Origin: Epithemia pelagica
Taxonomy: Eukaryota > Protista > Bacillariophyta
Reading direction: 5' to 3'
Length of the DNA stretch: 64,000 nt
Assembly: GCA_946965045.2 (NCBI GenBank)
Contig: OX337235.1
Coordinates: 2,976,001 to 3,040,000 of the forward strand
Shown here: in pieces, positions 3,138-35,511 of the stretch
Layout: each line of letters opens with the position of its first letter
Numbering within the stretch: position 1 is the stretch's first letter
Translations under genes and position numbers: made by a program
The notes under the pieces: model-generated
What the model was told of the DNA's origin: nothing
What the model saw: the letters and a program-made list of their open reading frames with translations, nothing else
Database searches by the model: none

Positions 3138-3381
3138 TGTAACGTGGGATGACCCGCCCGGCGCCATCGACTGGCCAATATCAGCCGTTGAACGGTTGAG
3201 TCGTTCGGGTCGTCCTGGTTGGCGAGCACAGTCTCCTTTCGTCCGAAGCGTACCAAGCACACAGTTCCCCCGTGAGTGCCTTTTCCGTCTCCTCCGCTCT
3301 CGTCGTTACCATGGCTTCTCACCGTCGCATCCACGAGTTCTACGCCTCTGGTCGCCCAGTGTACAGGCCTCACTCGTTACA
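3138..3381 (+). mobile_element. 3' LTR of the gypsy element (244 bp)
   Basis: Starts TGTAACG directly after the polypurine tract and ends CGTTACA (7-bp terminal inverted repeat). The 5' LTR is outside the window, so it cannot be compared. Confidence 0.7.
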
Positions 3382-5299: not shown

Positions 5300-5763
5300 A
5301 TTCTGTTGTGCAATTATTAAGTTCCGACTTGTGATGTTTTTCTTCCAGCCTCTCAAAATGGTTGTAGTTCGAGGTATTTCAAGCTCTGATTCTTCTGGGC
5401 CATTACGAGTCTAGGTTTTTGTGTTAACGAGTGGTTCTGGAATCGGGGAAAGTGATGAGCCCATCATGGGGTACATGGTACCCCCCGCGGGAGTGTCTTG
5501 GAGGTACTCCTAGTATAATTTCGTTTACAAACACCCCATTTGACGCCCGGGGTATATTTCACAGCACTCTATGTGTCCGTTTTCAATGAGAGATGTTTGG
5601 TGACAACTTTGTGTTTTCTGAATCTTCCCAGCGATCCCGCTATTAGTAGTGCCACAACCAGTGTTAAATAGTGTGTCCGCACGCAACTGGAGACTTGATC
5701 CCAGGTGTTCACCCACGGCCGTCCTGGTGTGGAATATACCACAATGTGGATGGAAACTTCACC

Positions 5764-11100: not shown

Positions 11101-12441
11101 TCAATATTCGAGATTGAGCTGGTTGACGAATGTTCCGAATGCGACTGAGCCATTGAACTGGATTTCTTCTGGCGACTCGATCGCCGCTTCGATATTCGAT
11201 TGGATCGCCTCAACGTCGTGGTGCTGGAGTGTTGTTTGATTCGCGGGGTCAACGTGGCGAAAATCGGGGTTGGTGAGCATGGCCGTCGACATGCCCGCCG
11301 TCCATTCCATCACCTGTGGGCGGATGTAACGGAGAAACGCGGCGGAGGACCATCGACCCAGGATCATAATCTTGAGGACGGAAGTGCGTGCCAAGAATAG
11401 CGCCATGGCGGCGCCCGAGCGGATGGAGTGAGTGCCAATTTCGGCTGGTCGGTAGCCGAACATGGAGAAGCCGCCGCCTGTGGTGCACGAAGAGCGAAGG
11501 AGGTTCATCGTGTCTTCTGCGCGGATGAAGCAAGGCTTTGGTTTTGATGTTTGAGCGAGAATCTTGGGATCGAACCAACAATTCATCGGTGTCTTTGCCG
11601 GTGCGTCTGGGTAGTAATGCAAGATTCGTCGAACGATACGGCCGCCGGTACGGACAGGGCAGAGGATCTTGTCGTGCGTCCGGCATTGGGTGCGAGTTTG
11701 GAATTTTTCTGCATTCTTTTGTTGGACGAACGTGATGGAGATGAAGAATGCTTCGTCGTCAAAATTTGGGTCGGTGGGGGAGATCTCGGATCGCATTTGG
11801 TCATTGCGCTTGAATCGGATGTTGCCAATGGTGAGAAGCTTGGTTTTTCCGCGCTGCTTTACAGTACTGTATTCGCAGCTTCTCATGGCGAAGAAAAAGG
11901 CCAAGATCGCGAGATCAGCCACGCACGCATGGAACGATGCTGAATCAACAATGTCTGCTGCAATTTTACATGCTGTGAGCCACATATGACGGAGGTGGTG
12001 CGGTGTAATCGCTTTTTGTCGGTTCTCCTCGGGGTCGAGTTGCTTCCAAGCCTTCTTCAGCGTTTCTATTATGGGGTGGAGGCGGTTGCAGCCCGGGAGG
12101 TGGCAGGGGCTTGGCCTCTCGAAATTCCTGAACTTCGATGCCAGGTCGCTAAGGGCCTTTTCGAGAGTTGACGCTCGAAGAGGCCCCGTAACTCCTTCGC
12201 TCCAAGTTCCGTCTCGCAGTCGTTGGAGGAAGGTTCCAACGATCTGCGATCGCGTTCGAATGGACGTGAAGCCGTCCAGAAAGGGGTTGTCGTGGAGATT
12301 GAAGAGTCGGAGGTGCAATAGCCACCGCTTCCATGATCGGTCTTGAGCTTGGTGGGACGATTCGACTCGTCCAAAGAAAATTCTTGTAGCCGCGGTGCGA
12401 CCGAGGAGATCCAGGATTTGATTTCGTTGGGCAATTCGCAA
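11101..12441 (-). CDS. Tyrosine recombinase of YR element 1
   Basis: Catalytic motifs MRSCEY, HSIRSG and GRWSS..FLRY. Overlaps the RNase H 3' end in another frame. Confidence 0.92.
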   Translation of the reverse strand: MRIAQRNQILDLLGRTAATRIFFGRVESSHQAQDRSWKRWLLHLRLFNLHDNPFLDGFTSIRTRSQIVGTFLQRLRDGTWSEGVTGPLRASTLEKALSDLASKFRNFERPSPCHLPGCNRLHPIIETLKKAWKQLDPEENRQKAITPHHLRHMWLTACKIAADIVDSASFHACVADLAILAFFFAMRSCEYSTVKQRGKTKLLTIGNIRFKRNDQMRSEISPTDPNFDDEAFFISITFVQQKNAEKFQTRTQCRTHDKILCPVRTGGRIVRRILHYYPDAPAKTPMNCWFDPKILAQTSKPKPCFIRAEDTMNLLRSSCTTGGGFSMFGYRPAEIGTHSIRSGAAMALFLARTSVLKIMILGRWSSAAFLRYIRPQVMEWTAGMSTAMLTNPDFRHVDPANQTTLQHHDVEAIQSNIEAAIESPEEIQFNGSVAFGTFVNQLNLEY

Positions 12442-15400: not shown

Positions 15401-15452
15401 TAGGAGACGAAGGAGCAACACTATTTTGAATGACTCTTGACCCATCCTCCTG
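12069..15452 (-). CDS. pol: RT-RNase H (pol) of YR element 1, open from the codon after the gag TGA
   Basis: KFDWGSAYRRI, LSFGG, YLDD; RNase H ADSCPYGMGG, SDSSSA, HIPGRQNVVTDMLSR. No stop between 15452 and the track ORF start at 15269. Confidence 0.92.
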   Translation of the reverse strand, partial: QEDGSRVIQNSVAPSSPNDSTSSTYLNPLVPPAPILNTPSSPSIAPDDTELIRSIPRTPVPVIPRTFSDERRISAEDINTKFPPANMVSVPHRVNFIDTVRCKSFSTNAPVSRKQMPSPQKTLPSILRKTPKDSTVQVLHDLSQVDVPNSRATPEDPPQLSSPNRFLLDAVAAAAKTQDEESQFSPNPPSDSSQIPFGRPRLEGSPSPNLASDLSGKSLQRNLSRLQDEMVSSEELLGEFDATLPLPRSGLIPVDFQDPYLPNDPSRIFTRKIPRPPRSATDVSHSVARIASICNSSVATPQASPFVHQLTLSAAQTNSDLIEEYGFDLQALFDAHPNSTISPGSEFRPIHVIEPLLQHHPFWPLLSSMLFRGASYKFKNLPPDSDRELENEAILEYGNHSSAVKRPDALRKVSEKDTKFGFSLPITFDCARKIKDGRVGPLGVAQHAGINEHGDIVIKDRLAHDQSFSLGFSPSLNDLVDDSELPDLVFGWCMNRLIHQIVALRLQFPTDRILICKFDWGSAYRRINGDGTLTASTITTDCSGEFANILTRLSFGGRPHPAMFSVFSEAACDLCNDLTDLDEWHPRICRSPLQDMMGPVCRLDDSVPFNPGMPIAVDVETKPKGYHDVYLDDMMQVFIDNSDNLERSTGIVPLVLHMLVRPVAPDEPIHRTEILAADKMKAEGAPSETMRVLGWLLDTRRLLMILPRDKYLGWTKQIKSLVDPERKYWTFDEIESILGKMTHACKGIPLALFYTKRMQAFKTKIIKRYVARHTSSDNETNQPETGRPSPRPRPWFRYSIPPSIRTDLEIWVKLLEYAHRGVSMNLLTCRIPTNVVIADSCPYGMGGFSIRTGRAWHVALDPEVYAMAHEAEDLADDEATGSPDPSLSNNLFEFICQVVTIWQECWDGALPTDACVLGLSDSSSATGWMHRSSFGANKPNHQRVSARLTELTLEHRFALHSEHIPGRQNVVTDMLSRSFDCCDDDLTSQIHSLFPNQIPKNFRICELPNEIKSWISSVAPRLQEFSLDESNRPTKLKTDHGSGGYCTSDSSISTTTPFWTASRPFERDRRSLEPSSNDCETELGAKELRGLFERQLSKRPLATWHRSSGISRGQAPATSRAATASTP

Positions 15453-18398
15453 TCAAGAAGATTTCTTCTTCTTCGCCTCCGCAAAAGTCTTCTTGTAAAA
15501 GGCTGTCATCTCACTTGCTTTGCCATGCTCTTTGGGATCAGCGTGGCAGAAGTGGCAACTATTACCGTTGCGACAATACTTCATGGTAAAAAGTTTGTTG
15601 CAGAACGGTCGTTCTTTTCCATCAATAGTGAGTTTCGGTGTGGAGGCCAAGACATCTCGCGTAAAGACCTTCGAGTACTTCATATCCGGAGGGATGCACC
15701 ACTCGGGGGGGGGGAGTCATAGCGGGCACTCAAGGCACGAGAATCGGAGTCAGTCGAAGGAGAGGCACGTTTCTTAGAGGAATTGTCCGAAGAGCCGCCG
15801 GAGGACCGAGAAGAATCATGGCCGGGTCTCGCTTTGGAACGAATGGCTTGATCGATAAACTTCGGGAGCATCTTGCAGATATCCTCCTTGGATTCGATCT
15901 TGTCGCACAGTTTATTGAAGTGGAAGTCGAGTTTTTCACACCGAATGTCTTCAAGGCATTCAGCATCCTCCAACATCTTATCGATGAATCGCTGGATAGC
16001 GAAATCGATAGAGAATAAAACACGACAAAGGAAGGTTGGGTCGAAGTCCTGGCTGTTGCGGTAGATGACTCGGTTCGACAAAAAATGTTCGACCATCTTA
16101 TGGATCTGCAAACAAGCGTAAGAATTCTCATCCCAAATAGCGCAAGCGAAAAGGTAATAAGACCGAAGTTGCATGGAGAACTCATCACAGGTAAGTGGGA
16201 AAAACAACTTCTCGTTCACAAAGATATCTCGCATATCTTTTGTCGACAAACCGTTGTCATGGCGAAGAGAACTCTCATAAATGTCATGTTGAATATCATA
16301 GTCGAGGGATCGCTGGGAAGCAGAGCTCGAAGAACCGTTAGGATCAAATGAGAATGGGGAGAAACCACTGGGGTGATCCTCTCCACGCCAACGGAGACCA
16401 TACTTCTGCAGAACTCCGTATTGACCAAAGAGAATATGACAAGCGTTGTCGGACTTCCGAAATACTCGAGCGTGGATGGTCGAATAGAAGGTATGGGTGC
16501 TCTTCTGTCGAAAGAGTTCAGTAGCAACCTCGGATGGGGACTGGGGAAGTTCCGTCGAGTTCGGACCAGCCTGACCGAAGACAATGCCGTTGCGAAGGTG
16601 AGAGGTATGTTTGAAAATCTCACGTTTCTCGTCGTCTTTCTCTTTAGAAATGCTCTTGGAATGTTTGAGAAGGGACTCGGAAAATTGTTCGGATAGTTTA
16701 TCCGCCATGTAGATCGCATCAGCGGAAACGGAGGGACCATTGGGGTTTGTAGGTATGTTTGAAAATCTCACGTTTCTCGTCGTCTTTCTCTTTAGAAATG
16801 CTCTTGGAATGTTTGAGAAGGGACTCGGAAAATTGTTCGGATAGTTTATCCGCCATGTAGATCGCATCAGCGGAAACGGAGGGACCATTGGGGTTTGTAA
16901 TCGAATCCGGACTTGGGTGGGCTTGAGGAGCTAGGGAGACCGGAGGGATGCCTTGGGGAGCTTGTGGTGGGGGAGCGAGTGGTAGTGGAGGAAGAACTTG
17001 AGATACTGAACCAAAATTCAGAGTCGGGAATAGACGGTTCACATGATTCTTCAGGGCAAGCAAGGCAGAGTCAAAGGCAGCTGGAACTTCAAAAGAAACC
17101 GACTCGATCTTAGACGCCTTATGGTGCGCGAACCAAAGGAAGCGGAACAAAGGAAGGGAAGCTTTGACCAAATCATTGTCTAAGGGAAACGAGGAAAGTT
17201 TCTTCTGAGCGTCTTCGGGAACGGAACGAGCCCAGCGGCGGGACACGATACCAAACACACAAGAAGCAATGGAAGGAGCGCCACAGCGAGGAGTACCATA
17301 TCCGAACTTCGAGAATAGCTGCAACAATTCACCTGAGAAGGCGGGATGAATAGGGAAAAGTCCCTTACAAGTGAAGGAATTCACAGGAGATTAGGGATCC
17401 GAGGGGCATTTCGGTTTCTTCAGGTTTCCAAACGAAGCAAAGTCCAAACAAAACTTGGGGAGGCAATCGTCAGGGCGTTTCTTCTTGGGTGAGGGAGTCA
17501 TGGCGTCGTACACGCAAGTGCCAAGGATCTCGGCAGCTGATGGGATACCGGAGTGATCCATGTTCAGAAGAAGGCCTGAATCGATTTCATCCGTATCAAA
17601 GCAGATAGGAGGGGAACCAAATTTTGAGTGGCAAAGACCTATAAAAGAAGGAACGGGATTCAAGAAGGTACCAGAATCCGGTCCAACCAAAAGGTTGTGA
17701 ACGAAACGGATCTTGCCTTTAGGGTCGACGCAAAGGAAGGCTTGAGAGGAAGCATTCAATTTGCAGGACAAGAAACGTTGTAGTTCGGGACTCGAAGAAA
17801 CTTATTCAAATCCTTTGCAGAACTTCGACCAGGATAACAGATCACGGTCCAGTGACAAGTTAAAAGGAAGAGTAAAGCTATCAGACCAATCCAAAGGAGG
17901 GCATGAGGAAAGGCTGTCAAGAACCGAAGTCGGGATAGGATGAGGTGACTTGAAGATATCGGAGGGGCGGCTAAGGGGGGAGCCACCATTCGAAGTACCA
18001 AGATCCACCTGCTGGTTCGACGTCTGACGTTTGGGAGAAGGAGGGGGTTTAGGTTTAGCAGAAGAACGTTTGGGAGATTTAGGAAACTTCTTCTTCGAGG
18101 CCTTCGCGGTATCAGAAGAAGAGCTCAGAGGAAGGTTCTTCTCGTTCTGATCAGAGAAGGAAGGATCATCACCATCCTCGTCCTCGTCACCAGAAGGGGC
18201 AGGAGTTGAGGAATGATAGGGAGCAGAGGGATCATCGTCAACACCAACACCATGGTGGGATTCCAGAAGTTGAGAAGGTTGGGAAACCACCGCTGCAACG
18301 GAAGCAGTCCCGTCTGCGCAATGAGGAGCAACAGAAACCCCAGGTCCCTCATCTTCATCGAAGAAGAGGTCGTCCTTGTAAGGTTGAGTAACAGTCAT
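15453..18398 (-). pseudogene. Gag-like ORF1 of YR element 1, disrupted
   Basis: Homologous to intact ORF 31661-34552. In-frame TAA at 17802-17804 and 17391-17393; frameshifts from the 148-bp duplication and near the G-run at ~15705. Ends in a C-x8-C-x5-C-x3-H zinc finger. Confidence 0.85.
16603..16898. repeat. Apparently perfect 148-bp tandem duplication
   Basis: Units start at 16603 and 16751. The ORF track shows identical peptides in ORFs 15680-16888 and 16216-16740. Confidence 0.95.
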
Positions 18399-20157: not shown

Positions 20158-22575
20158 TCAATATCCTGATTGGAAGTGCACGTTTGATTCTTCGACATGG
20201 TTTTTTTTCCAGACCTGAGGAATGAGAATGTCCGGAATCTGCATCTCGTGCCGAAACGACCATGGCTGTGCTGAATCACGTGTATAGGGGCGATCCACGA
20301 AGTAGAAAACATCGCCTGACGTACCAAAGAGAACCGTTTTATGTCTTTCGGTACAAGAATGCAAAAACTCATTGTCATCATCATCGTCATCGAAAAAGTC
20401 GTCGTCGTCATCATCATCATCATCACCGAAAAAGTCACCAGTAACATCTTCCTCATCATCAAATTCCTGATCTTGATCTCCCTCGACCTCAGGGTCATAA
20501 CGAGACACTACTTCAACTGTGTATTCAATATCGCCAATACTGTTTTGATACCGATGGACTGGACGACAAAATAGTTGTTCAGTTCCACTTCGAAATCCGT
20601 TCCGAAGAAAGCCCATCTCAAGAAGAAGGTCTACGTCGCATTGAAAGTCTGGAAAGTGATGGTTCGGGTTGCGGCTTGATTCGCAGAAGTCATGATTCAG
20701 CAAGGAAAAATCTTCACGTCTCTCCCAGATAGTCGGGAGCAGTAAATGAGGCTTGTGCTTATTCAACTCGAACGCACTTGCGGGGATGCAAGAGGACGTC
20801 GGAACTGACCAATTGGCCACATGCTGCAACCATGCCTGTTCCCATTCCTCTCCGTAGTCAAGGAAAACTTCTTCACCTGGCCCGATATCCCGGGTTGCCA
20901 CAAACTCCCAAGCAAGGCCAGATATTTCAAGGTTGTCCCATTCACGAGGGTTCTTTTCGAGCCATTCTGGATGCGACATGAGCTTTTTACTCCAAATGAT
21001 CTGGGCATTTGCGCGTTCTCGTGAATGATTAATGAGGGCAGTCCCAACGCCGTATGGACATAGCAAGAGGTCGATATCAGAATGACCATAGCAGTAGTTC
21101 AACAACAACTGCCGATGATACGGTGGTTCTGTTACGTTGCGAGGGTCTCTTCCGCCTTCAGAGTACAAGTAGTTCTGGCCAGAGAGTGGTTGATACATGT
21201 TCAATGATTTGCGATCAGGGATATGGATCAAGGGAGCCGGAGCTATTGTTTGTCCCTTAACGATGGGTCGACGAGCGAAAGCACCCTGCCCAGCATAGGG
21301 AATCGAACTGGTTCCTGGCTCCAAATTGTCACTGCAGCTGCCATTTTCTTTGAGCCACTCAATTGAACGTATGCTCTTGTGAACATGTGACTGTCTGACA
21401 CCCTTGCGCATGATCTCTTCAACTCGGTCAAATTCGTCCGGCAACGTTTTTACAACTGTGCTGTCCCAAATATCGTGGAATGAATGTACCGACAGATCAT
21501 ACAGATCCTCCATCCATGAAGGATTCGAGGATGAAACGAGCGAAGGGCGGCTCTCGTTTTTTCGTTGCTGATTTTGAACCTTACTGATGACCGCGTCAAA
21601 TGACTGTAGCAATCTGTCTCCCATCCAAAAATGGCTAGATCTAGGCACACCTGCATATTTGTCCTCTGCAAAGTATGATTCACCGTAGCTTATAAAGAGT
21701 TCCATCCTTCGTGAAGGAACGTGAAGAGTATTTTATCGTTTGTTTGTATTGCGTCATCAAGAACACTCATTAGTTGGGAATGCGAAATGGGACCACATAA
21801 TCTAGTTGCTTCTTACCCTCTTGAAATGCTCTGTTGGGCAATTCCTTGTGGACCATGAAAACTTGTCATCGCCCCGGCACCAGGATGACTTCCCATAGGC
21901 GAAGAGAGACTGTAAGTAACTCCACCACTTGCCATGGTGGCTTCTCCATGCTCAACATTATTCAATGCAAAGTTACAATTGATAGCCGCGCCAATCCCAA
22001 AACTCGCCGCTTTTGGTTCCTGTGATTCTTCTTCAACCCCATCGAACTCATCGCCCGCCCATGTATACCTGTAGATGATTACGAGAAATGGATTCATCAA
22101 TGATTAAGGTGTTGAGTGAACGGGGAAGGCAGAACTTTTTGCATTCTCGTGTAAAATTGTGAACGGAAATACTGTCCAAAACGACTTACATATCCCACAG
22201 AAATCGCTTCGCACTTGGACGATTGTGATTGTGAAATTCGTAGTCATGAATTGGAACAACAAGGTCACCAGGAGTCACCACTTCCCCACTGGCAAAAGCA
22301 TGCCCTGCATATATCCCCAGGCCGGCTCCAGGAATAGTTGAGGGAGCCATGTAAACTCCACATGTATGTATCTCGCGGTTGTCGTTATTGTCTTCAGTAT
22401 CATGTTTTTCTTCGGGAAGGACCAAGTTTTCCAGCTCCGAGGTTGGATGGCAACATTGCAAGCTTCCATACGTTACAGTAGATGCAGACTGGTTTGAGGG
22501 CAAAGACGCAGCTACAGCTGAAGCGCAGTAGCATGCGAACCAGAAACCATGGTTAAGTATCGAATGATGAACCAT
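20158..22575 (-). CDS. Secreted/ER tandem SET-domain protein (BacSET-like) paralogue 2; exons 22575-22190, 22068-21817, 21706-20158
   Basis: Introns 22189-22069 and 21816-21707 have the same positions and phases as in the 5764-8128 gene. Same SET motifs, HGFW...AVAASLP leader and poly-Asp tract. The start could alternatively be 22659. Confidence 0.8.
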
Positions 22576-23097: not shown

Positions 23098-25206
23098 CTA
23101 TATAAATACTTTGACTTGGTTGTATCGAGCGGTAGCAACTGCCAGGTGCTTCGAATCCGGTTGGAAATCATGCAGCACTGTCAGCGCAAAGATGTACCCT
23201 ACCTCATCTAGTATTTTGTGACACTTGGTTTCAATTCGATGCGAAGAGAGGGGATCGACATTCATGACATTGTCACTTGTATCCATGTCACCGTCGCTAT
23301 TACCTGTTTGCGAGTTGCTTCGTCCTTGGTCGTCTTTTTCTCCTCGCAGTTGCGCCGACTTCCACAATTGAACAGTCGCATCGTACTTGCCACCGGCCGT
23401 TAGCAAGTCCCCGTTGGGTAAGGGAAGAATACACTGGACAGCATCTTTCGTATGACCACCAAGGGTCGAAACAACGGCAATCCTCTCGATGCTGTCGACT
23501 GGAACGTTTTTTGCCATTTTCAAAACATAAACTGCCCGTCCCAATGGAACCGACACTTGTGCTTCTCCCAACGACGACGAGGCAGCGCTAGGGCTACCAG
23601 TTTCTTTGGTGGACACTACAATTTCCCCGTCCATGGTTGTTTCGAGACAAACTATGGAGCACCCCTCACCCGTTTCGGGTGTTAATCTCACATAAAACGA
23701 CTCTTGTACGGACACCGAGGACGAGGCTGGGGTGGAGGAAACGTTCTGCGGCAATGACATGTCCGTCGCCAGTACCTTCCAAAATCGCAACCCACCCGTT
23801 ACATCTCCGGCAATCAACCACGTGGGCTCTCCGACTGCCGTGCCAGGCACAACGGTGAGACAGGTCAACGGTGCGGCTCCTTCACTGTCACGGGCCTCCA
23901 AGACCAGGGATCGGAGGACCGGCCGCGTAGAAGCGTCCGACATTGTGGACGTGGTCACATCGGAAAACCATAGTTGAATGCATTTCGACATTCGATCCAG
24001 CTGATTTTGCAAGGCTTGTTCTTGTGCTTCGGCTTGTGCCCGACGTTGCCGTTCCACTTCAGTTTGCGGAGCCAAATGAAACTGATGCGGATTGGGCAGT
24101 CGAGTACTTTCAAAGCGTGCCGCCAAACATAAGAGAGAGGGTGCCGTCGTCTCGGTGTGGTTGTGGTTGGGTGCTGCCGCAAGCGCAAGGGGAACGTGTC
24201 GCAAGGAGGTGGGACTCGCCGCTCCAGGCATGGGACTGGCAAGTTCCAGAATTTCGTGGGCAATGTCCTCCTTCGTGGAGTACGACCACAAACGAATCAT
24301 TCCCCGTCCTGCCGTCGCAAACAAAGTAGAGGAGGAAGACGATGATGATGACGAAGAAGACGAAGACAAGGAATTTGCGGAACAATCCTCCAACACAGCA
24401 ATGCTTTGGACACCCCCACTACTATTCTGGAAAAATGGATGACCCTGGTGTACCAAATCGTCTTGCAGCACGCCATGTCTCCAAAATTGAATGTGTCCGT
24501 CGTCCAAGGCACTAATGAGGGTTCCATTTTGTGGCAAGACGGCCAAATCGTTGATATACGCTCGTCGTAGTTCCATCCCCATCCCCATTACCACCCGACC
24601 TAGTACTGTTGTCGTCGTTGTCGTTGTTGTTGTTGCTGCAGCAGCAGCAGCTGGGGTGTTGGTATTGGATGATGTTGAATCTGGTCTTGCATCGTCTTTC
24701 TTTGTCGGTTGTTGCTGCTCCAAGAGCAAGGATTCAATGTGTCGTTGGGGTATCCCCGATACGTAATGGTTGTACGCGTACCATTCGGTTTTGTTGTCAT
24801 TTCGTTCGTACGGTGGTTTCTGTATCGCCGGTATCATTCCAATGACTTGTTCTGATTCTGGGTCATTGTTTCTCATGGCCATTCTTCGTTCTTGTTCTTG
24901 CAATTCTTGAGGTGTCATGTCTTCGACAAACTTGATGGGTGTGGCGGACTGTTGTGGTAAGACGGCGGCCGATCCAATCAAGGTCACTACCATGGTGGTT
25001 GTCGACAGCGAACTAAACGAATAGTCGTCCTGGAGGATTCCCTTCCAACCACCCTTTTTGGCCAATAGCTTTTGTCGTTCGACGGGGACACCCGTCAAGG
25101 ATTGTATCCGTTCCTTGAAGGATGCCGGCGAATCGACGTGTGGATCCAACTCCATCGAAAACGTTTGTTTGGACCATTTCAAGGTAATGGCAATCATTTT
25201 GTACAA
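23098..25206 (-). CDS. Ubiquitin-like (Ubp6/USP14-type) N-terminal domain fused to WD40 repeats
   Basis: ITLKWSKQTF...FKERIQSLTGVPVERQKLLAKKGG...LIGSA resembles a UBL domain. WD repeats LISALDDGHIQFW, GDVTGGLRFWK and GHTKDAVQCILPLPNGDLLTAGGKYDATVQLWK. Confidence 0.75.
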   Translation of the reverse strand: MYKMIAITLKWSKQTFSMELDPHVDSPASFKERIQSLTGVPVERQKLLAKKGGWKGILQDDYSFSSLSTTTMVVTLIGSAAVLPQQSATPIKFVEDMTPQELQEQERRMAMRNNDPESEQVIGMIPAIQKPPYERNDNKTEWYAYNHYVSGIPQRHIESLLLEQQQPTKKDDARPDSTSSNTNTPAAAAAATTTTTTTTTVLGRVVMGMGMELRRAYINDLAVLPQNGTLISALDDGHIQFWRHGVLQDDLVHQGHPFFQNSSGGVQSIAVLEDCSANSLSSSSSSSSSSSSSTLFATAGRGMIRLWSYSTKEDIAHEILELASPMPGAASPTSLRHVPLALAAAPNHNHTETTAPSLLCLAARFESTRLPNPHQFHLAPQTEVERQRRAQAEAQEQALQNQLDRMSKCIQLWFSDVTTSTMSDASTRPVLRSLVLEARDSEGAAPLTCLTVVPGTAVGEPTWLIAGDVTGGLRFWKVLATDMSLPQNVSSTPASSSVSVQESFYVRLTPETGEGCSIVCLETTMDGEIVVSTKETGSPSAASSSLGEAQVSVPLGRAVYVLKMAKNVPVDSIERIAVVSTLGGHTKDAVQCILPLPNGDLLTAGGKYDATVQLWKSAQLRGEKDDQGRSNSQTGNSDGDMDTSDNVMNVDPLSSHRIETKCHKILDEVGYIFALTVLHDFQPDSKHLAVATARYNQVKVFI

Positions 25207-25567: not shown

Positions 25568-26947
25568 CTATACTGAAGCCGCATTCAAGAAATCTCCGCT
25601 CCGGAATTTAAGTCTCGCACCGTTCAATGGTCCCCATGTCATTTGGACCACAGCATTCGTGGACGCAATGTATCGAGAAAAATCGGGGCCGAGAACCAGT
25701 GCCACTTCTCTCCGTCCACTTTGATTGTCATTATCTGCCCGTATCTGAAGAAAATACAGTTTGGAAATATCGCCCTTCGTATTGGTCACGACATCCATCT
25801 CAAGGATCACATCGCCAGAAGAAAACGGTTGTGCATAGATGGATGCCGAAACAACCCGCACCACGCTATCAAGAGTTTTCTTCATCTTGATGAACCATGG
25901 AGTGCTTTTGAAGCTGGAAGTTTCAACCACACTAGTCACAAGGTCATTGGCTGTGATTGTGGAGTTGTTGGCGTCATTGCACATGGTATCAACCGTTATA
26001 TCAACCATCGCGTTCTGGAAACTATTCACCTTGTTTCCGAACACAAGAGACATGGAGTTCGACTCGGATTTCCCAAGCGCAATGTTTTCAGTGACTGTGC
26101 ACATCCACTCCATGGTTTGTGTGTTGACCTCCAGGTTAATGTTGGAATTTTTCAAAGAGAGCGATTTCTTTTGCGGCAGGATTGGTAACGTCAAATCGCT
26201 AATCACACGCCCTCCAATGCGCCATACCTTTGATTCAGAATCATCTTTGCTGATATGAACCTTGGCAGCAAGTGTGTGTGAATTGTCCAGTTTTGCAACC
26301 AAGGTCCCATAGCCGGATATGGAAGGCTTGCCCATTTTTTGTATTGTCATCTTGACATCTTTTAGGGCAATGTCCTTGGTGAGCCGAATTGCCTTTTCCC
26401 TTGTCACAACCAACTTGCCCTGGGCCAGTCCGTCCAGTAGCTTCTCGAGGTAGATCAAATCTTTGCCATATTTGGCCGCAAATTCCAAAAAAATCTCCAC
26501 GGCCCGGACTTATTGACCAACATATGGAATGTCACCAGCCAGTTCAATTACTTCATCAATAAGCTCCTTGTGTTTCAAGTAAAACTCCTCGGCTTCTTCG
26601 AGTGTTCGAACCGTGTCATCCGCAATGGTAACCGTGCGCTTGAAACACCGGTTTGGTTTCGCAGTACGACCCGCAGCAGGTACTGGCTTCGAATCACTCT
26701 TCTTCTTTGCTTGCAGACGACTCGTAGTGCCATCTGTCAAAGTTGGTTTTGATCGAGTTGATGCCTTACTGACCGCAGTAGTGGATACCGTGCCAACTTG
26801 CTCCCTCTTTGGTTGCTGATGATTCGTCGAAGTGCGGTTCATGGAGGCTGTCTTTACTCCAGTTGATTCCTTGATCGTCAAAGTATTCGTGGGTGCAGCG
26901 TCGACGACTTGTTGTTTCTTTGGCTGCGGACGAGTTGTGTTCACCAT
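25568..26947 (-). pseudogene. Unknown protein; two in-frame ORFs separated by a single TAA (26510-26512)
   Basis: ORFs 26510-26947 and 25568-26500 are in the same frame and read IPYVGQ*VRAVEIFLEF. The 3' part is duplicated at 63146-64000. Confidence 0.5.
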
Positions 26948-27367
26948 GATGATGTTTTGCTATTTTTTGTGTTTCTCTCGAACAATGTTTTGTTTTGTGA
27001 GCAGAGTTCTGAATCCTCCGTACCTTGCAAAACAATACTTGGGGGGATTATTCGCGGGGTAAGGACAACTGGTTTACGGTCGAGCGCACTGGAGATTCAG
27101 CGCTTGACAAACTCCCGCATAAAATGTGCCTTTCGGCTGGACATTCTGCTTCTCTAGAGGTGTCGAAGAGACACTACGACAAACATCCTTGGCACGTGCC
27201 GTTTCGGTCTGTCCGAGAGATCGCAGTCGGTTCTGTCACCGAAAACTTGGTCCGTTGAGATTTGTAAACAAGATTCTAAATCTAAACGATAGCCGAAGGC
27301 CTCTGAAACCAAAAATGGCTCCACTACCATCAAACCCGATATTACAATCCAACGATGTCCAGCTGGG

Positions 27368-28789
27368 CTAGAAGTCGAGATGGAGAGTGGTGGGGAAGTG
27401 ATGTTGGGGATCTTGGCCATTGAAGGTGTTAAAGAGGTTTTCATCCGGTGATTCGAGAGCAGTCTCGCTGTTCGTTTGAAGGGCCGGATCAACGAGGTTG
27501 TCGAGTCGGTTCCGCAGGTGTTCCAAGGAGGCGATGCGGGAAGCTGTTGTTGAGTTGTCAACATGCCGAAAGTCGGTAGTGTTGAGCATTAATTGGGCCA
27601 TGCCCGTGGTCCATTCAAGAACCTGTGGTCGGATATATTTCATGAAAGAGGTCGAACTCCATCTTCCAAGAATCACTATCTTGACGACGGAACAATCAGC
27701 CAGGAACAGGGCCATGGCGGCTCCTGATCTGAGAGAGTGCGTGCCGATATCCATTGGGTGGTAGCCAAAGGCGTTGACTCCGCCGCCCAATACACAGGTT
27801 TCTCGTAACAGGTTGCGAGTATCTTCTTGTTGGACGAAGCGAGGGGGAAGGGATGGGTTGGATGGGTCAAACCAACAATTCACTGTCGTGGATGGGGGAG
27901 CTTTCGGACGGTAGTGGAGAATCCGACGAATGACGCGGCCCCAGAGAAGGACTGGGTCGAGGATGGGGTCATTCGTTCTGCTCTGGGTACGAGTTTCAGC
28001 TTTGTGGTTGTTCTTTTGGTCTCGGAACGTTATCGAGACGTACTTCGCGAGGCGGTGAAAGTTGGGGTGGTTGGCGACGATCGTTTCGTGTTTCTTGGCG
28101 GTGAAGAACACGATGTCACCGATTGTTAGGAGTTTTGTTTTTCCTCTGTGGGGCACGGTCGTAATCTTGCAGCTTCTGCATCCAAAGAAGAAGCCGCATC
28201 CTGCGAGGTCGGCGACGACGGCTTTGAAGGTGGAGAAGTCGTAGACGCGTGGTGGGTTGGTGAGTCTGTTGGTTCGACAACAGTGGAGCCAGAGGAAACG
28301 GAGATGTTTGGTGGTAATGGCTTTCTCTCCTTTTTCGGGGGGGGGGTCCAAATTTGACCACGCGCGTTTGAGGGAGGCGACGAGGGGGTGGACGTGATGG
28401 CTGTCTTGACAGTGGCAGGGGCTCGGCCGGTCATGATGCCGGAAGCACGATGCCAAGTCTCCAATGGCTTGGCCAAGAGTGCTTGCTTGAAGAGGGTTCG
28501 AGCAGTCGCGATTCTTGGTGAATTCGGCGTCTCGGAGGGATTGCAAGAAGGAACATGCGATGCTGGCTCTGTGGTTGGATGCTTTGATGGACTCGAGGAG
28601 TGGATCGTGACCAAATCCAATCTTGTCGAGGTGTTCTGTCCATCGCTCCCAGACTTTGTCGCGCTTTTGGTGTGCTCCTTCGGTCTTGCCGAAGAAGATT
28701 CTGGACACGCTGGCACGATCGAGGAGATCCAGCATGTGATCTCGTTGGGGAGTGGTTTGATGCGAAAATTCGCGGGAATCTGAGAACAA
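27368..28789 (-). CDS. Tyrosine recombinase of YR element 2
   Basis: CRSCKI, HSLRSG and GRWSS..FMKY. Overlaps pol. Confidence 0.9.
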   Translation of the reverse strand: MFSDSREFSHQTTPQRDHMLDLLDRASVSRIFFGKTEGAHQKRDKVWERWTEHLDKIGFGHDPLLESIKASNHRASIACSFLQSLRDAEFTKNRDCSNPLQASTLGQAIGDLASCFRHHDRPSPCHCQDSHHVHPLVASLKRAWSNLDPPPEKGEKAITTKHLRFLWLHCCRTNRLTNPPRVYDFSTFKAVVADLAGCGFFFGCRSCKITTVPHRGKTKLLTIGDIVFFTAKKHETIVANHPNFHRLAKYVSITFRDQKNNHKAETRTQSRTNDPILDPVLLWGRVIRRILHYRPKAPPSTTVNCWFDPSNPSLPPRFVQQEDTRNLLRETCVLGGGVNAFGYHPMDIGTHSLRSGAAMALFLADCSVVKIVILGRWSSTSFMKYIRPQVLEWTTGMAQLMLNTTDFRHVDNSTTASRIASLEHLRNRLDNLVDPALQTNSETALESPDENLFNTFNGQDPQHHFPTTLHLDF

Positions 28790-31660
28790 AAATTTTTGTG
28801 AAGAAAAAGGGTAAGTTCGTTATCGTTAAGATACCAATGTCGTGACAAGATATCTGACACATCGTTCTTGCTCCCTGGAATATGCTCGGCTTGAAGGGAG
28901 AACTTGTGGTGAAGAATAAGTTCTGTTAGCTTCTTGGAGACTTGGACATGCAACGGCTTGTCAGATCCGAAGGATGATTTGTACATCCAGCCGACGGCGG
29001 ACGAGTTGTCGGAGAGACTCAGTACGGCCGAGTTTTCTTCGATGCCATCAAACCAACAATCAACCCACATTGACACAACAATTGCAATGTATTCAAAAAG
29101 ATTGTTGGTGCGTGTGTTGGTGGATGATGGGTCGAGTTGGGCAAGAGCTTGGAGTCTTGCTGGGTCGATTCGGAAGCGCCATGCTCTGCCGGATCGCACC
29201 GAGTAACCGCCCATCTCTTCGGGGCAGGAGTCGGCATGGAAGAGATGGGTGGGAACGCGACAAACCAGTCGATTGAGCGAGATGCCGTTGTGGGCATGTT
29301 GGAGGAGAGACGGCCACATTTCAAGATCCTTGGCGATGGAGTCTGGAATGGAGTACCGATAGAATGATGGAGGGACGTCTCTGTTGGGTCGAGGGCGTTT
29401 TGGATTCTTATTCGTCTCTGGTGGTTTTGCTTTCTGTTTCTGTCGGAACGCCCGTTCAATGAAGGTTTGGTACTCGCGAAGGCGAGACAACCAAAAGGAT
29501 GCGTGGGGTATGCCTTTGGTGGCATGTAATAATTTTCCAACCAAACTGCGGAGGTTGTGGAAGGTGGTGCGACGGGTCTTGAGAAGATGTTGTACTTCTC
29601 GGGTCCAACCAATCAGTTTGTCTTTTGGGAGACAAAGGAGGAGTCGTCTTGTGTCAACAATCCACCCGAGAACTCGTTGTTCTTCAGCGGGTGCACCTTC
29701 GGCTTCGAGTTTGTCGGCTTCCAGCATATCTTTTCGTGTAATTGGTTCGTCCTTGGCAACTGGTCGTGTCATGAGATGGACGACGAGAGGAACGATGCTC
29801 GGACATCGGCCAAGGTGAGGGTTGGTTGCAAGGAAGACTTGTATCATATCATCCAGATATGAATCGTGAAAACCATGGGGACGAGTTGGGACGCTGACGG
29901 CCAATTCACAGGCGGGTGCAATGGGAATGTCCTCTGGGAGATATTTGGGTCCTCCAATTCCTTCTTGGAGGGGCGATTGACAAAGGTCTGGCTGCCATTC
30001 ATCGAAATCGGCCAGGTCGTTGCAGAAGTCAGTTCCAATTTCCGAGACGATGGAAAATTCGGCCGGGTTGGCGGAAGCTCCAAACGTCAAGCGGAGATTT
30101 AGGTGGGCAAAGGAATTGGAGGGATCGATGGTTATATTCCTTGCTGCAACATCGCCGTCGCCATGAACTCGGCGGTATGCGGAGGACCAATCAAACTTGC
30201 TGATAAGGATACGATCGGTGGGAAATGCCAGACGCAATGCAACGATTTGATGGAGGACTCTATCTATACAGTGACCCATCACAAGGTCAATCAATTTGCT
30301 TTGATCAATCAAATCGTTGGTCGAGGGGCAAAATCCGAGGGAAAAGGATTGGTCGTGTGTCAAACGGTCTTTCGGAACAAGGTCGCCGTTGGCCCGTTTG
30401 GTGGGCGACACCCATGGGACTGATTCGACTATGCTTGATGCGTTTGGCACAGTTGAATGTGATTGGAAGAGAGAATCCTTTAGAAGCGTCTTTCCGGAGA
30501 ACTTTCGAAAGAGCTTTGGGATTTTTCTTGCCAGAAGCGTGATTGCCGTATTCGAGGATTGCCTCGTTTTCAGCGCGTCTGGCTGGCTCGTCTTCCTCAG
30601 CTGTGAGAGGATAGGAGACACCATGCGTGATATTGTGGTGAAACCGTGACCAGTATGGGTGGCCGGCTAGGAGTGGTTCGAGAATTTGGGCTGTGCAAAA
30701 TTCCGAGCCGGGTGTGATGACGGAGTCGGGGTGACTGTCGATCACTCGTTGCATGTCAAAATCAAACCGTTCAATCAGCTGTGAGTTGAAGGTTGCATTG
30801 GACAAAACAACAGAATCGTCAATAGAGTGACGAAAGGGTGATGGCTTGGGGGTTGGTGGCTCGTGATCGGCGATGAAAAGCATGACGGAGAGACGGATTG
30901 GGTGGCGAATAGGTTGGAGTGGGGGAGGGGCCAGTCTTGTGGGAAAGATTTCGGAAATCTCGTTGGGAAGGTAGCATTTGCCAGAACTTGGGGAACTGAA
31001 CGTCGTGTCATCTGCAATATTAAACTCACCTAGTAATTTTAAATCCGCTTGTCGAGCCTGTTCCAATCGTTTTACATTCCTTGCTAGGGGCTTGCCTGTG
31101 AAATCAGACCCGATGATCGCGGAGGAACTCCCTGGGAGAGATTCCGCAATTTGTGAGGGCAGATTTTCAGAATGAGAACTTGGGGGACTTGGGGGTCTTG
31201 TAGAAGAATCAACGATAAGGGAATCTGTTGGGTGATCCTTGGAAGTTGGTCGGGGGTGACTGTTGGCAGTCGTGGGGCTGGAAGTGGGTGCGTCAACGGA
31301 CGCGGATATCTTGGGAGCAGAATCAGACGTGATGACACATTGATTCTGAACGGACGAGATCAAATCGGAGAGTTCTCGTTGACGAGTCTCTGGATATTTT
31401 GAATAATCCTGGGTGATGTGATGAATCAAGAAAGGATTCGCAGTGCTTGGAATCTTAGGTTTGTGGTCTGACGACGGTGTCGCCAATGGGGGAAGGAAGG
31501 ATGGGACAATTTCGGATGAGAGTGGTGGAGGTGGAGCAAGAGGCTTCAAGTGGGAAGAAGACTCCGCAACTATAGTATTACTATTAATGGTGGGTTGAGA
31601 GTCGTCTTGCGACAAAAGAGGAGGAATCGAAGATGAGGCAACAATCAACCCGTCCTGGCG
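28126..31660 (-). pseudogene. pol: RT-RNase H of YR element 2 with a frameshifting short deletion at ~30392
   Basis: GVAHQTG in ORF 30305-31648 continues as NGDLVPKDRLTH in ORF 28126-30624; copy 1 reads GVAQHAGINEHGDIVIKDRLAH. YLDD, ADSCP and HIPGSKNDVSDILSR motifs present. Confidence 0.85.
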
Positions 31661-34552
31661 TCAATTGTTGTTGACGTTGGCGTACGCGGAGCGGTAAAAC
31701 TCGTCCATCGCCGCTTTCTTGTCATGCTTGCTGGGATCGTCATGGAGGAATTTACACTTCTTCCCTTTCTTGCAAATCCCTTTGGTGAAAAGAATATTGC
31801 AGAAATGTTGTTTCTTGTTGTTCTTTTCGACGAATGGGATGTTTGTGAGAACGCTTGGGGGAAAGACACGCATATAATTCGCATTCTCGGGAATCCGCCA
31901 ATTGGAAGGAGAATCGAAAGTGATGGGGGTCTTGTTGGTCTCAGAATTCGACGAGGAAGAATTTTGTTGTCGCTTGGAGCTCGGGGAACCGTCATCAAAG
32001 CCACCGGATCGTTTCTTCTGGGAAGTCTTCTGTCGGTTTGCTTGGAATTTGGCTTGGAGAGCTGGAGGAAGAGAGACTAAGGTCAAACCAGTCTTGACGG
32101 TGAAAAGAATCCAATTCACTCGCTCTTCAAAGTCTCGGAATCCCACGTCTCCAATGGATGATGCACTCGAAAGGGTAGAGACGAATTCTTGGACGGCCTC
32201 GTCGATGGCAAACAGAAATTGGCCGAAATAAAAATCGTTGCCAGAGCTTTGTTGTTTGGCCATGATCTTGGTGCGAAACTGATGATAAAAGTTCAAGACT
32301 TTGAGGATCTGGTTCGCAATTGCTGAAGAGGCACCGCAAAGTCCTTTTGCACAAGCCCAAAAGGAACGAAGTTGTTTTTTGAATTCATCGGCGGTTCTTG
32401 GGAAGAACAAGTTGTGGTCCGAGTAAAGTTGCTGCATCTCCTTTGACTGCTTCATGTCATTGAGATGACATAAGGAAGCATCGTGGATTTGCTGGCGAAT
32501 ATTCTTGTCCAAGGTGTTGTTTGAATCTAGCCCCGGAATTGCGTACGGGTCGAATGAAAAGGGGCTGAAGCCACCAGGACAAGCCTCCGATTTCCAATGC
32601 AATCCAAGTCGTTGGATCACAGTGCATTGGCCGAAAAGGATTGTGCACGCATTGTCGGATGGGTCGAACACTTCTGCAAGGAAAGACTCAAAGAATGTCG
32701 CTGAATTCTTTGACTTCCAAACAATCTTGATGATCGGAGACAGTTCGTCCGGGAGAGATGTTGCCTTTGGTGTAATCGATCCCAGACGTAATTGTTTTTG
32801 GGCATTCAAGGGTATGTCCCTAAACATGCTCTTGGACTCTGGAGCAGTGATATCGTCCTCATTTCCACTCTTCTTGGAAGTAACTTCTTTGATACATTTT
32901 GAGAGCAAGACCATTTCGGGAGAGACGAAATGAACGTTGCCTTCATCGTCCAACATGCGAACGCCGCCTTGAGGAGAAGAACGGTCACGCAATTGTGAAG
33001 AGTCTGGAAGAGGCAAACAATCAACCGGTGATGGTGACCGAAAGCGCACACTTGAGGAGGACCGACGAAGGGATGGGCGTCGAGGGACAGAGGACTGTTC
33101 TTGTGGGTGCGAATCGTTTTTGGGAAAGATTCGAGAACGATGATCCAACAATGTAGTAGTATTCGCTTTCTGTGGGTCTGCAGGGATGGATGGGAAGACG
33201 GACTGTAGCTTGGGATTCTTTGGACGATGGAGAACAATCCACAAAAAACGAATGATTGGTTCCTGAATCTGGAGAAGAGGGTAATCGATCGGCATACCTA
33301 ACTTCTTGGACTCTGGGGACAGATCTCTGGAGGCTTCCCACCAGTGAAACAAAGCCACTTTATACAATCCACTTGCAATATCTTCGAATGACACGGTAAT
33401 GTCTTGGCTCGAACGGTCAGTATTGTGGAGCATCAGACCAGACAAGCATGGAGGAAGAAGACACAAACTTGAGCATAGAAATTCACGGTCAGACTTCGAG
33501 CCAGTGTCGGAGGAGGAAGCTACGGTGAAGGTCTTGAACTTGGAGGGATCAAATGAGAGATGGGGAACGGACGAAGAATCGGAGAAATCGTCGATCTCAA
33601 CAACACAATGTTCAAGGATCTCGGCAAAGGTCGGAACATTAGGGAAAACATGTTCGGACAACAAAAGGGGAATGTCGTCACTGTCGATCTGAAAGGGCGG
33701 AGACTCGAATGAGATTCGGTCAAGACCATAGAATGTCGCTTGAGGATCCACGAACGTTCCACAATCGGCAGGGCAGCAGATGTTGTGGAAGAGGAAGGGG
33801 CGTCCATTGCGAGACAAACCAAGGAATGCCAGTGGGTGGCTCTTCATCTTCGAGGTCAGCCAAACATGGAGATCGTCGGAGGAGGATAGACGGTTAAAGC
33901 TGGAGCACACCTGCGACCACAAGGTAGGGTCCCGAGAAAGAGCGACGTGAAATGGCTGGAGAAAAGAGTCGCACCAGTCGATCGGGTCGACTTTTGTCAA
34001 CTTTGAGAAGATATGTTCCAAGGCTTTGTCTCCAAGCGAATGGAAGTCCTGCGTAAAGTAGAACTCATGGCGGTAGGCGCCTGCACGGAGAGAGGACGAC
34101 GGATTGTCGTTGTTGACGTCGTCACCATCCTTGTCGTCAACAAGGATGAAATCATCCTTATCAAGGGCACTTGGAGGAGCATCTTCATCGGAGCGGGATG
34201 TGGAAGACTTGCAAACCGGAGGAAGCGGAGCCTTAAGCCTCTTGTTGTCAGACTTGGACAGGAACTTGGACTTGGAGGAGGCAATAGCATCCAAGAAGGC
34301 TTGTTCTTGGAGGTCAGCGTCAGAATCCACCGAAGAGTCATCAGCTTTAGCATGGTGATCCTTGAGGGAAGACTTGTCGGAGGCGGAAGGCTTGCGATCG
34401 CCATTCGAATCATCGGGTTGGGAGACGACCGCCGCCGCTGCGGGAGCAGACAAAGAAGGAGAAGGGGGATCAGATCCTTTCGTCGACGTCGGCGTCTTAC
34501 CAAAGAGATCCTCAAGGAAAGGGTTGGAACCGGTAAAAGTCATGATGAACAA
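31661..34552 (-). CDS. Gag-like ORF1 of YR element 2 (963 aa, intact) with a C-terminal CCCH zinc finger
   Basis: Uninterrupted ORF with CNILFTKGICKKGKKCKFLH (C-x8-C-x5-C-x3-H) and an acidic/Ser-rich N-terminus. The likely ATG is at 34543. Confidence 0.85.
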   Translation of the reverse strand: MFIMTFTGSNPFLEDLFGKTPTSTKGSDPPSPSLSAPAAAAVVSQPDDSNGDRKPSASDKSSLKDHHAKADDSSVDSDADLQEQAFLDAIASSKSKFLSKSDNKRLKAPLPPVCKSSTSRSDEDAPPSALDKDDFILVDDKDGDDVNNDNPSSSLRAGAYRHEFYFTQDFHSLGDKALEHIFSKLTKVDPIDWCDSFLQPFHVALSRDPTLWSQVCSSFNRLSSSDDLHVWLTSKMKSHPLAFLGLSRNGRPFLFHNICCPADCGTFVDPQATFYGLDRISFESPPFQIDSDDIPLLLSEHVFPNVPTFAEILEHCVVEIDDFSDSSSVPHLSFDPSKFKTFTVASSSDTGSKSDREFLCSSLCLLPPCLSGLMLHNTDRSSQDITVSFEDIASGLYKVALFHWWEASRDLSPESKKLGMPIDYPLLQIQEPIIRFLWIVLHRPKNPKLQSVFPSIPADPQKANTTTLLDHRSRIFPKNDSHPQEQSSVPRRPSLRRSSSSVRFRSPSPVDCLPLPDSSQLRDRSSPQGGVRMLDDEGNVHFVSPEMVLLSKCIKEVTSKKSGNEDDITAPESKSMFRDIPLNAQKQLRLGSITPKATSLPDELSPIIKIVWKSKNSATFFESFLAEVFDPSDNACTILFGQCTVIQRLGLHWKSEACPGGFSPFSFDPYAIPGLDSNNTLDKNIRQQIHDASLCHLNDMKQSKEMQQLYSDHNLFFPRTADEFKKQLRSFWACAKGLCGASSAIANQILKVLNFYHQFRTKIMAKQQSSGNDFYFGQFLFAIDEAVQEFVSTLSSASSIGDVGFRDFEERVNWILFTVKTGLTLVSLPPALQAKFQANRQKTSQKKRSGGFDDGSPSSKRQQNSSSSNSETNKTPITFDSPSNWRIPENANYMRVFPPSVLTNIPFVEKNNKKQHFCNILFTKGICKKGKKCKFLHDDPSKHDKKAAMDEFYRSAYANVNNN

Positions 34553-35511
34553 GGTAAACTCAGAAGATTAGCTAACTAGAATCGTTGCGATCTCGAACTC
34601 GTCTCGTAGTCGTTGCAAAGATGCTGAACCCAAGAAGAGTGAGCTCTTCTCACGCTCCAACGACTCTGCATCAGGGTCATCCTAAAACTTCCGATTGTGG
34701 GAATCAAATCGGATGCTCGCCTCGCGTCGAGGAGGCGGAGCAGTCGCACCGCTGTTGTCGGTCGCGGAGTCTGGCCAGCATCGGCCACGTCACTCCACCC
34801 AGTACAGACACAGGTGGCACACCGCCTTTAGCTGGACCGCTTGACGTGGGTGAAGCGAATAGTATCTGCTGCTCCACTGGTTTGGTTTGGGTCTTGTCTT
34901 GGGTCTTGCCCTACGCTATTAAGAAAAATAAATCGCTCTTTACTGTACTCTACTCGTATCCATTCCCAGTTCATGTCGTGATTCATAGTTGTTTTGGTTG
35001 GGTGTAAAGATTAGATTCCCCAACTGGCTTTCTCTGGTCCATCAGTCATCAGTCAGTCCGTCAGAAGGCCATGGCGTTCAACAAGAGAAGGCCCTCCGTA
35101 CTTTCATTGGTTCGATCCTTTCATGCCAGTGTTCCAACTCCAGCGCTGTTTCTGGAAAAGAACAAAATTCCCAACAAGTCGGCCTGGTGACAATTGGTCA
35201 AGCCGTTTTTACTCAAAAGCCATTTAATATGATGGCATCGCTTCAAGAACAAATCAAGAAAGGGACCGATAATAGTACTGAATGATGACAATTCGTCCAT
35301 GAAACAAACCAATCTCCAAGCCATTCAGAATCTCAATGTGTATTTGGATACCATTCAAACCATGGTCGATGCTGTCGCGCAATCGCACGCCTTGGCGGAT
35401 CCCGAACAACAATCACAACCACCATCCAGTAAGCCAGTAAGAACAATCCTCAATTAGCCTCATCCAAAATTCCCTTGGAGTTGTCTTGGTGGTCGAAGAT
35501 ACGACAGCCCT

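Follow-up and report, generated by a model that had tools for sequence, protein, structure and literature searches.

The stretch of DNA examined here, referred to as the window, comprises 64,000 nucleotides (nt) of the diatom Epithemia pelagica (assembly GCA_946965045.2, contig OX337235.1, positions 2,976,001 to 3,040,000). It contains two diverged copies, element 1 and element 2, of a putative tyrosine-recombinase retrotransposon, both read on the minus strand. Here we report that the gag-like and pol genes of these elements are separated by an in-frame UGA stop codon, that a stem able to form in the RNA begins at a fixed distance past this stop, and that the arrangement recurs in numerous relatives, a pattern that would suit the production of a Gag-Pol fusion by stop-codon readthrough. 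The junction of element 2 consists of the following features.

31664-34543, minus strand: gag-like open reading frame (ORF) of element 2, 960 codons from the first ATG at 34543, with no internal stop.
31661-31663, minus strand: UGA between gag and pol, in frame, candidate for the codon read through, with C as the base that follows (31660).
31652-31660, minus strand: 9-nt spacer, CGCCAGGAC.
31645-31651, minus strand: 5' arm of the stem, GGGUUGA, codons Gly-Leu-Ile.
31599-31644, minus strand: 46-nt loop between the two arms.
31592-31598, minus strand: 3' arm of the stem, UCAACCC, in codon phase 2.

Element 2 gag carries a CCCH zinc finger at its C-terminus (residues 911-953; Pfam zf-CCCH; Torus E 6e-7) and closes with AAT-TGA, after which the same frame goes on as CGC CAG GAC GGG TTG. 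GGGUUGA and UCAACCC form 7 Watson-Crick pairs with no mismatch. The minimum-free-energy (MFE) fold places a possible 4-base-pair (bp) extension of the helix inside the loop, past a 2x2 internal loop, between 31642-31639 (GUUG) and 31604-31601 (CGAC). The counterpart in element 1 has two corresponding features.

15453-15455, minus strand: homologous in-frame UGA of element 1, followed by C.
15361-15443, minus strand: stem-loop of element 1, GGGUCAAGAG (15443-15434) with CUCUUGUCCC (15370-15361), beginning 9 nt past the stop.

After the element 1 TGA the frame reads CAG GAG GAT GGG TCA, again with a spacer of 9 nt. The arms of its stem, GGGTCAAGAG and CTCTTGTCCC, differ in sequence from those of element 2; 9 of 10 positions are paired around a 63-nt loop, and the single mismatch is U.U. 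In L027, a sister lineage of element 1, GGGCCAAGUG pairs with CACUUGUCCC, an A-U pair having been swapped for U-A. An earlier note on the window had described the element 2 junction down to the closing AAT-TGA, the in-frame continuation, the C after the stop (position +4, counted from the U of the stop), the 9-nt spacer and the 7 pairs, and had seen the same layout with a different stem sequence in element 1; both descriptions were confirmed, the latter with TGA, C and spacer at the element 1 positions listed above. Its remark that the surrounding protein is poorly conserved holds for the stretch past the stop and fails for the CCCH finger at the gag C-terminus, where the two elements share ~35-40% amino acid (aa) identity.

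Further copies were sought in the organism's own 60.5-Mb assembly. DNA searches gave 35 places and a hidden Markov model of the gag C-terminus gave 68, all of which were fetched; junctions were readable at 66 of the 68, the other two being a truncated copy and a weak match. The homologous codon is TGA, and in frame, at every readable junction (66/66), and the base after it is C in 62 and T in 4. The codon following UGA is CGC, CAG, CUG, CAA or CGG, and the consensus UGA-CGG/UGA-CUA is matched only sometimes. These copies fall into ~31 lineages (< 85% nt identity), between whose clades the gag C-terminus is down to ~35% aa identity. In most copies the UGA is the only stop over a long stretch: gag can be followed back for 400-612 codons before it, and pol runs on after it for ~500-620 codons, as far as the fetched DNA extends. 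One decayed copy has an additional TAG upstream, and in L096, from an ENA assembly, pol is open for 966 codons past the stop.

The stem recurs at one position in these lineages. When the longest helix anchored at each offset was measured in 31 lineage representatives, the tenth nucleotide past the stop (+10 below) ranked first of 1800 offsets, with a mean of 7.48 bp against 4.17 at control offsets; counting Watson-Crick pairs only, the mean at +10 is 6.23 against 3.30 at other offsets. Codon shuffling reduced this Watson-Crick mean to 3.99 +/- 0.17, and 0 of 300 shuffles attained the observed value. The spacer is constant in length across lineages (9 nt), and its sequence varies by clade. Folding energy, read only as the profile obtained by progressively blocking 5' bases, places the boundary at the same point: blocking bases up to +9 is free, and from +10 onward each base costs 3-4 kcal/mol in most lineages. 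For most of the 31 representatives, the unconstrained MFE fold has +10 paired to the arm predicted for it.

The two arms covary. In alignment A3 (MAFFT, 22 lineages), 79% of the cells of a 12-pair helix are paired, compared with 33-51% when the partner is slid by 1-3 columns. Eight of the 12 pairs have changed on both sides, a score attained in 0 of 500 column shuffles, and pairs 28-30 with 110-112, in the region of the helix extension, covary partly. A covariance model built from A3, R1, found junctions of divergent clades (E 6e-7 to 0.9) and was left out of the pair counts; a MAFFT alignment of all 31 lineages (A2) misaligned the L085-L090 clade. Distinct perfect helices occupy the same position, namely GGGUUGA/UCAACCC, GGACUGA/UCAGUCC and GGGAUGA/UCAUCCC, as do the further helices GGACUGUUUG/CAAACAGUCC, GGAUCGUCGAA/UUCGGCGAUCC, GGGUCAUCGU/ACGAUGACCC and GAGUCUUCGG/CCGAAGACUC, and some lineages reach 11-12 bp. 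The four 10-11-bp helices (5' arms GGACUGUUUG, GGAUCGUCGAA, GGGUCAUCGU and GAGUCUUCGG) are each significant against codon shuffles scored with weighted pairs (P <= 0.003). Three remain at P <= 0.003 when Watson-Crick pairs alone are counted, and GGAUCGUCGAA loses its significance (P = 0.28) because a G.U pair interrupts the helix. The 7-bp helices GGACUGA/UCAGUCC and GGGAUGA/UCAUCCC are not individually significant (P about 0.08-0.12).

The pattern of substitution around the stop does not follow the encoded protein. In a 1200-nt alignment of one clade, profiled for nucleotide identity, the most conserved 9-nt bin is the 5' arm (0.94) and the second peak is the 3' arm (0.82); the loop stands at 0.35-0.55, the loop and 3' flank are poorly conserved, and there is no third peak. 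The 5' arm of L023 carries the synonymous changes GGG to GGA (Gly) and UUG to CUG (Leu), both of which are matched in the 3' arm, one of the matching changes there being non-synonymous (Pro to Ser). Translation of the 3' arm UCAACCC gives S-Q-P in the clade of element 2 (codon phase 2) and L-N-P in the clade of element 1 (phase 1). Measured against a conserved L-I-V, the stop of the L086-L090 clade comes 4 codons sooner, and the stem still begins 9 nt past the stop, built from different codons. The stem has moved with the stop and therefore tracks the stop rather than the protein. Judged from these alignments, constraint acts at the nucleotide level rather than at the protein level.

Two further observations concern the sequence just past the stop. 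In L086-L090 and L096 the 9-nt spacer, CUGAUUGUU, is homologous to the 5' arm of other clades, the new stem being built from the next codons. A (V/I)-x-E-S-S motif (GAGUCUUC at the RNA level) lies beyond the stem-loop, ~30 codons past the stop, in L001-L025, L077, L081 and L093 and directly past the stop in L085-L091, where the motif itself forms the 5' arm.

Relatives outside this genome were reached mainly through pol. Following its homologues into other assemblies, SRA runs and metagenomes gave six contigs, all six with an in-frame TGA before pol and five with a CCCH gag in frame upstream, the gag of the sixth (L103) being broken. One of these relatives, L099 (NCBI assembly), has the TGA, a 9-nt spacer and a 9-bp hairpin opening with GGG. 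In the distant relative L098 (a Joint Genome Institute metagenome contig, 323-5380), gag with its zinc finger and pol form a single 1685-aa ORF without a stop, which means that the wider group has members lacking the leaky stop. A metagenome scan with a reverse transcriptase (RT) alignment, A6, returned 80 loci, 32 of which have a long gag frame readable into pol; these canonical gag(CCCH)-pol junctions have an in-frame TGA without exception (32/32). Helices located 6-10 nt downstream reach at least 7 Watson-Crick bp in 21% of them, compared with 3.8% at control positions (Mann-Whitney p = 1.4e-4). Scanning metagenomes with a profile of the gag C-terminus (A1) gave no match. A search for gag homologues gave 6 proteins, of which two, P0005 and P0006, were traced; both lie on contigs from a single ENA assembly, with junctions almost the same as those of copies in this genome, and add no new species.

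We propose that the UGA at 31663-31661 is a programmed leaky stop used to express a Gag-Pol fusion in a tyrosine-recombinase retrotransposon, and on the comparative evidence we place the probability of this at roughly 85%. The majority of ribosomes would terminate at the UGA and release the CCCH-finger Gag-like protein, while a minority would insert an amino acid there by way of a near-cognate tRNA and stay in frame, giving a Gag-Pol fusion with RT and RNase H; the leakiness of the stop would set the Gag:Pol ratio. The stimulator may consist of the stop context, UGA-C in this genome, together with the RNA stem, whose 5' end lies 9 nt past the stop. At that distance, the stem would be positioned at the mRNA entrance of a ribosome holding the UGA in its A site. 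Across the junctions compared, the leaky-stop architecture appears old and widespread in this retrotransposon clade, and the sharp version with UGA-C, a 9-nt spacer and a GGG-initiated stem is typical of the lineages of this genome. More tentatively, at slightly less than even odds, a large, widespread group of tyrosine-recombinase retrotransposons may rely throughout on UGA readthrough with a downstream stem to make Gag-Pol, as a trait ancestral to the clade.

The explanation that competes best with readthrough, though still an unlikely one, is that the stop is a true terminator and that pol is expressed by some other route (for instance reinitiation, an internal ribosome entry site, a subgenomic or spliced RNA, or excision of the stop with a short intron), with the stem serving, for example, packaging, dimerisation or pausing. 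A stem could in principle have such another role, and the recombinase ORF of the same elements, which lies in a different frame, must use a different route anyway. None of these routes, however, requires pol to share the gag frame, as it does in every lineage with hundreds of stop-free codons on both sides. A plain terminator should drift among TAA, TAG and TGA, yet TGA is found at 66/66 and 32/32 junctions; the first Met of pol lies far downstream (only at about residue 86 in element 1), yet the intervening frame is open; and the distance from stop to stem stays at 9 nt even where the stop has moved relative to the protein.

Less probable again is real readthrough with a stimulator more elaborate than a simple stem-loop, either a pseudoknot like that of murine leukaemia virus (MuLV) or some larger structure to which loop or downstream bases contribute. 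The conservation peaks coincide with the two arms only, the loop and 3' flank being poorly conserved, although the loops are long (31-79 nt), MFE folds put extra hairpins inside them, and the helix extends to 11-12 bp in some lineages. No second covarying helix was seen by eye, and no pseudoknot-aware search was made.

Chance nonsense mutation in decaying copies, with a coincidental stem, was also considered and is refuted by the conservation of the stop, the covariation, the codon-shuffle controls and the metagenomic junctions. Both window copies are defective elsewhere, and a 7-bp stem alone is weakly significant, as such an origin would lead one to expect, but TGA stands at the same codon in 66/66 copies from ~31 lineages and in 32/32 metagenomic junctions, many of the copies have no other defect, and the covariation and positional peak go far beyond controls. 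Chance mutation cannot explain the stop because one codon is kept, always as TGA, at this divergence and in otherwise open frames; we regard its probability as negligible. Equally improbable is that UGA encodes selenocysteine or is a sense codon in this organism: diatoms have selenoproteins and a stem near a UGA resembles selenocysteine redefinition elements, but no selenocysteine insertion sequence (SECIS) or other Rfam family was found at E <= 1 on either strand of positions 26500-35500, and TGA is not a general sense codon, since neither gag (960 codons) nor pol (1127 codons) has another in-frame TGA and the long ORFs of the window are delimited normally with TGA as a stop.

The earlier note had attributed the junction to selection on a recoding signal rather than to chance nonsense mutation, and the 66 genome and 32 metagenomic junctions, the peak at +10 and the covariation support it; spacer and stem proved to be conserved in additional homologues, and codon-shuffled controls never attained the observed family mean (0/300). 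Several points nevertheless weigh against programmed readthrough as we propose it. The occurrence of readthrough, its efficiency, the residue inserted and the mode of action of the stem are matters that we infer, from comparative sequence. A search for RNA runs containing this stretch found none. Copy counts overstate the number of independent events because the lineages share ancestry; the independent support is roughly a dozen different helix sequences together with the moved stop, not 66 copies. Both window elements are defective, element 2 by a break in the pol frame and element 1 by breaks in the gag frame. The loops closed by the stems are large (31-79 nt). Model R1, built from two clades, misplaces the 3' arms of the most divergent clades, and no single model spans the family.

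The 7-bp stem of the window copy is, taken alone, weak evidence, modestly beyond chance, and its significance comes from the family-wide comparison. Against codon-shuffled downstream sequence it has P = 0.017 with Watson-Crick pairs only and P = 0.16 with weighted pairs. These two scores were used when the test was rerun after a version allowing G.U pairs had given no excess: ~70% of those shuffles attain 7 bp, because the G/U-rich arm GGGUUGA pairs promiscuously. The C at +4, which the earlier note took to be kept, is kept in this genome's lineages (62/66) and is not conserved in the 32 metagenomic junctions (A 12, C 10, T 8, G 2), many of which also have short contiguous helices only. In view of both, the structure may not be universal in the wider clade.

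The identity of the elements was judged from the ORFs that follow the junction.

30308-31660, minus strand: in-frame continuation of element 2 past the stop for 451 codons, covering a linker rich in Ser and Pro and the first part of pol, after which the frame closes.
28129-30666, minus strand: remainder of element 2 pol (putative RT and RNase H) in a shifted frame, 846 open codons, homologous to element 1 pol.
12072-15452, minus strand: element 1 pol, 1127 codons without interruption, in frame with the UGA.
27371-28819, minus strand: tyrosine-recombinase-like ORF of element 2, 483 codons, in the -1 frame relative to pol and overlapping it.

Gag-side and pol-side proteins were searched as separate pieces, split at the stop. 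The RT/RNase H region of pol had no match in Pfam, NCBIfam or PDB sequence searches, even with a 21-sequence profile. Because these searches failed to recognise it, the RT was assigned by motifs and fold search. Element 1 pol contains KFDWGSAY and YLDD (RT) and HIPGRQNVVTDMLSR (RNase H end). An AlphaFold2 model of pol residues 420-780, made from a 19-sequence alignment (pLDDT, the model's confidence score, 80), has as its top Foldseek matches the RTs of Ty3, cauliflower mosaic virus, Moloney murine leukaemia virus and foamy virus (probability 0.91-0.97, E 7e-3, TM-score ~0.3-0.36). This support, coherent but weak, suggests that pol carries RT and RNase H. Homologues of pol in a representative protein library number 3900, of which 449 have E <= 1e-30; the RT/RNase H of these elements belongs to a large retroelement RT clade without a curated model.

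The recombinase-like ORF of element 2 shows, by eye, the motifs HSLRSG ... GRWSS ... Y (HxxR ... GRW ... Y). Its element 1 counterpart has a weak match to Pfam Phage_integrase (E 0.007, under the gathering score), and element 2 has no such match; PDB and NCBIfam searches with the recombinase ORFs gave none. The two ORFs (27371-28819 and 11104-12498, both minus strand) lie in the -1 frame, overlap the 3' end of pol by ~430-690 nt and lack an early ATG. Expression across this second junction must work in another way than at the UGA, for example by frameshifting, splicing or internal initiation. No protease was detected in the elements, nor was a methyltransferase domain, and the latter result makes Ngaro a better fit than DIRS1 or PAT. 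The gene content is compatible with tyrosine-recombinase retrotransposons of the DIRS order, Ngaro-like in character.

The pol frame of element 2 breaks 1.27 kb past the stop, with the readthrough signal of the same copy intact.

30390-30396, minus strand: place of an 8-nt shortfall in pol of element 2 and of L002 relative to sister copies (MAFFT alignment of L001, L002, L003 and L005).

The frame shifts because the copy is 8 nt shorter than its sisters near 30393; in the sisters L003 and L005, pol stays open for 620 codons, the whole length fetched. L002 is 99% identical to element 2 and lies ~38 kb downstream of it, beyond the window (G000:C8), and the shortfall common to the two suggests either that the copy was duplicated locally or that a single source, itself already defective, inserted twice. 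With its pol broken, element 2 therefore displays the family signal and is not an active element. In element 1 the gag region (15683-17390, minus strand) is spread over three frames with 223, 416 and ~87 open codons, and pol is intact. The window copies that carry the signal are accordingly both broken, and other members of the family appear to be intact.

Gag-Pol readthrough is textbook knowledge for gammaretroviruses, and alphaviruses and several plant viruses are known to use UGA-C with a stem-loop; the readthrough context of the alphavirus, furovirus and tobravirus type is the 'type II' of Beier and Grimm. The junctions described here probably represent a known recoding mechanism, with strong comparative support, in an element class and a host group, the diatoms, for which it appears to be undescribed in the literature searched. 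Firth et al. 2011 (PMC3159437) defined a readthrough class with UGA followed by C(GG/UA) and a stem 8-9 nt downstream (9 nt in the eastern and western equine encephalitis viruses, EEEV and WEEV); the loop there is long and little conserved, conservation peaks in tandem at the two arms, and substitutions compensate each other. In those viruses the stem boosts readthrough up to 10-fold (Firth et al. 2011, PMC3159437). The copies in this genome resemble the alphavirus type in their UGA with C at +4, their stem of 7-12 bp at 9 nt, their long and poorly conserved loop, the two arm peaks, the compensatory substitutions and the position of the polymerase as a readthrough extension. They differ in residing in what is probably a nuclear retrotransposon of a diatom, known here from its sequence, rather than in an RNA virus, in using codons after the UGA beyond CGG and CUA, and in having loops of 31-79 nt as opposed to about 100-150 nt.

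Readthrough at MuLV gag-pol involves UAG-G, an 8-nt spacer and an H-type pseudoknot. As proposed here for the diatom elements, Gag terminates there and a minority of ribosomes read through to an in-frame Gag-Pol, and in both cases the structure lies ~8-9 nt downstream and starts with GGG. Unlike MuLV, the diatom elements have UGA in every copy rather than UAG-G and a 9-nt spacer whose sequence varies by clade; a second stem forming a pseudoknot is unsupported (no third peak, no Rfam match), and the two are related only via the RT fold. Long terminal repeat (LTR) retrotransposons with one stop between gag and pol are a further parallel, diatom Copia elements among them (Maumus et al.); the present elements differ from diatom Copia in having a putative tyrosine recombinase instead of an integrase and no detected protease. 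A structure or covariation analysis of single-stop gag-pol LTR elements was not found in the literature searched. The order of genes, with a Gag-like ORF, then RT and RNase H, then a recombinase ORF overlapping pol, is that of DIRS, Ngaro and PAT elements. No report of stop-codon readthrough in DIRS, Ngaro or PAT elements was found in the literature searched, which excluded the founding Ngaro and DIRS papers; a match for readthrough in a paper on a Cafeteria Ngaro element proved irrelevant.

Clade-wide readthrough, if true, would give the DIRS order its first described recoding signal, and the natural helix variants, about a dozen with the spacing fixed at 9 nt, would amount to a ready-made mutational series for readthrough stimulated by a simple stem. 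The comparative set is unusually clean, with one genome, dozens of copies, ~31 lineages and many helices at one position, and may be viewed as a natural test set for 3' structures that stimulate readthrough in a non-model eukaryote. The finding also bears on the control of the Gag:Pol ratio in this little-known group. It matters for annotation as well, since gene callers break such elements at the UGA and their RT escapes Pfam.

Between the two elements, also on the minus strand, lie host-like genes recognised by Pfam, encoding a ubiquitin plus WD40-repeat protein and a SET-domain protein, at 23098-25206 and 20158-21705.

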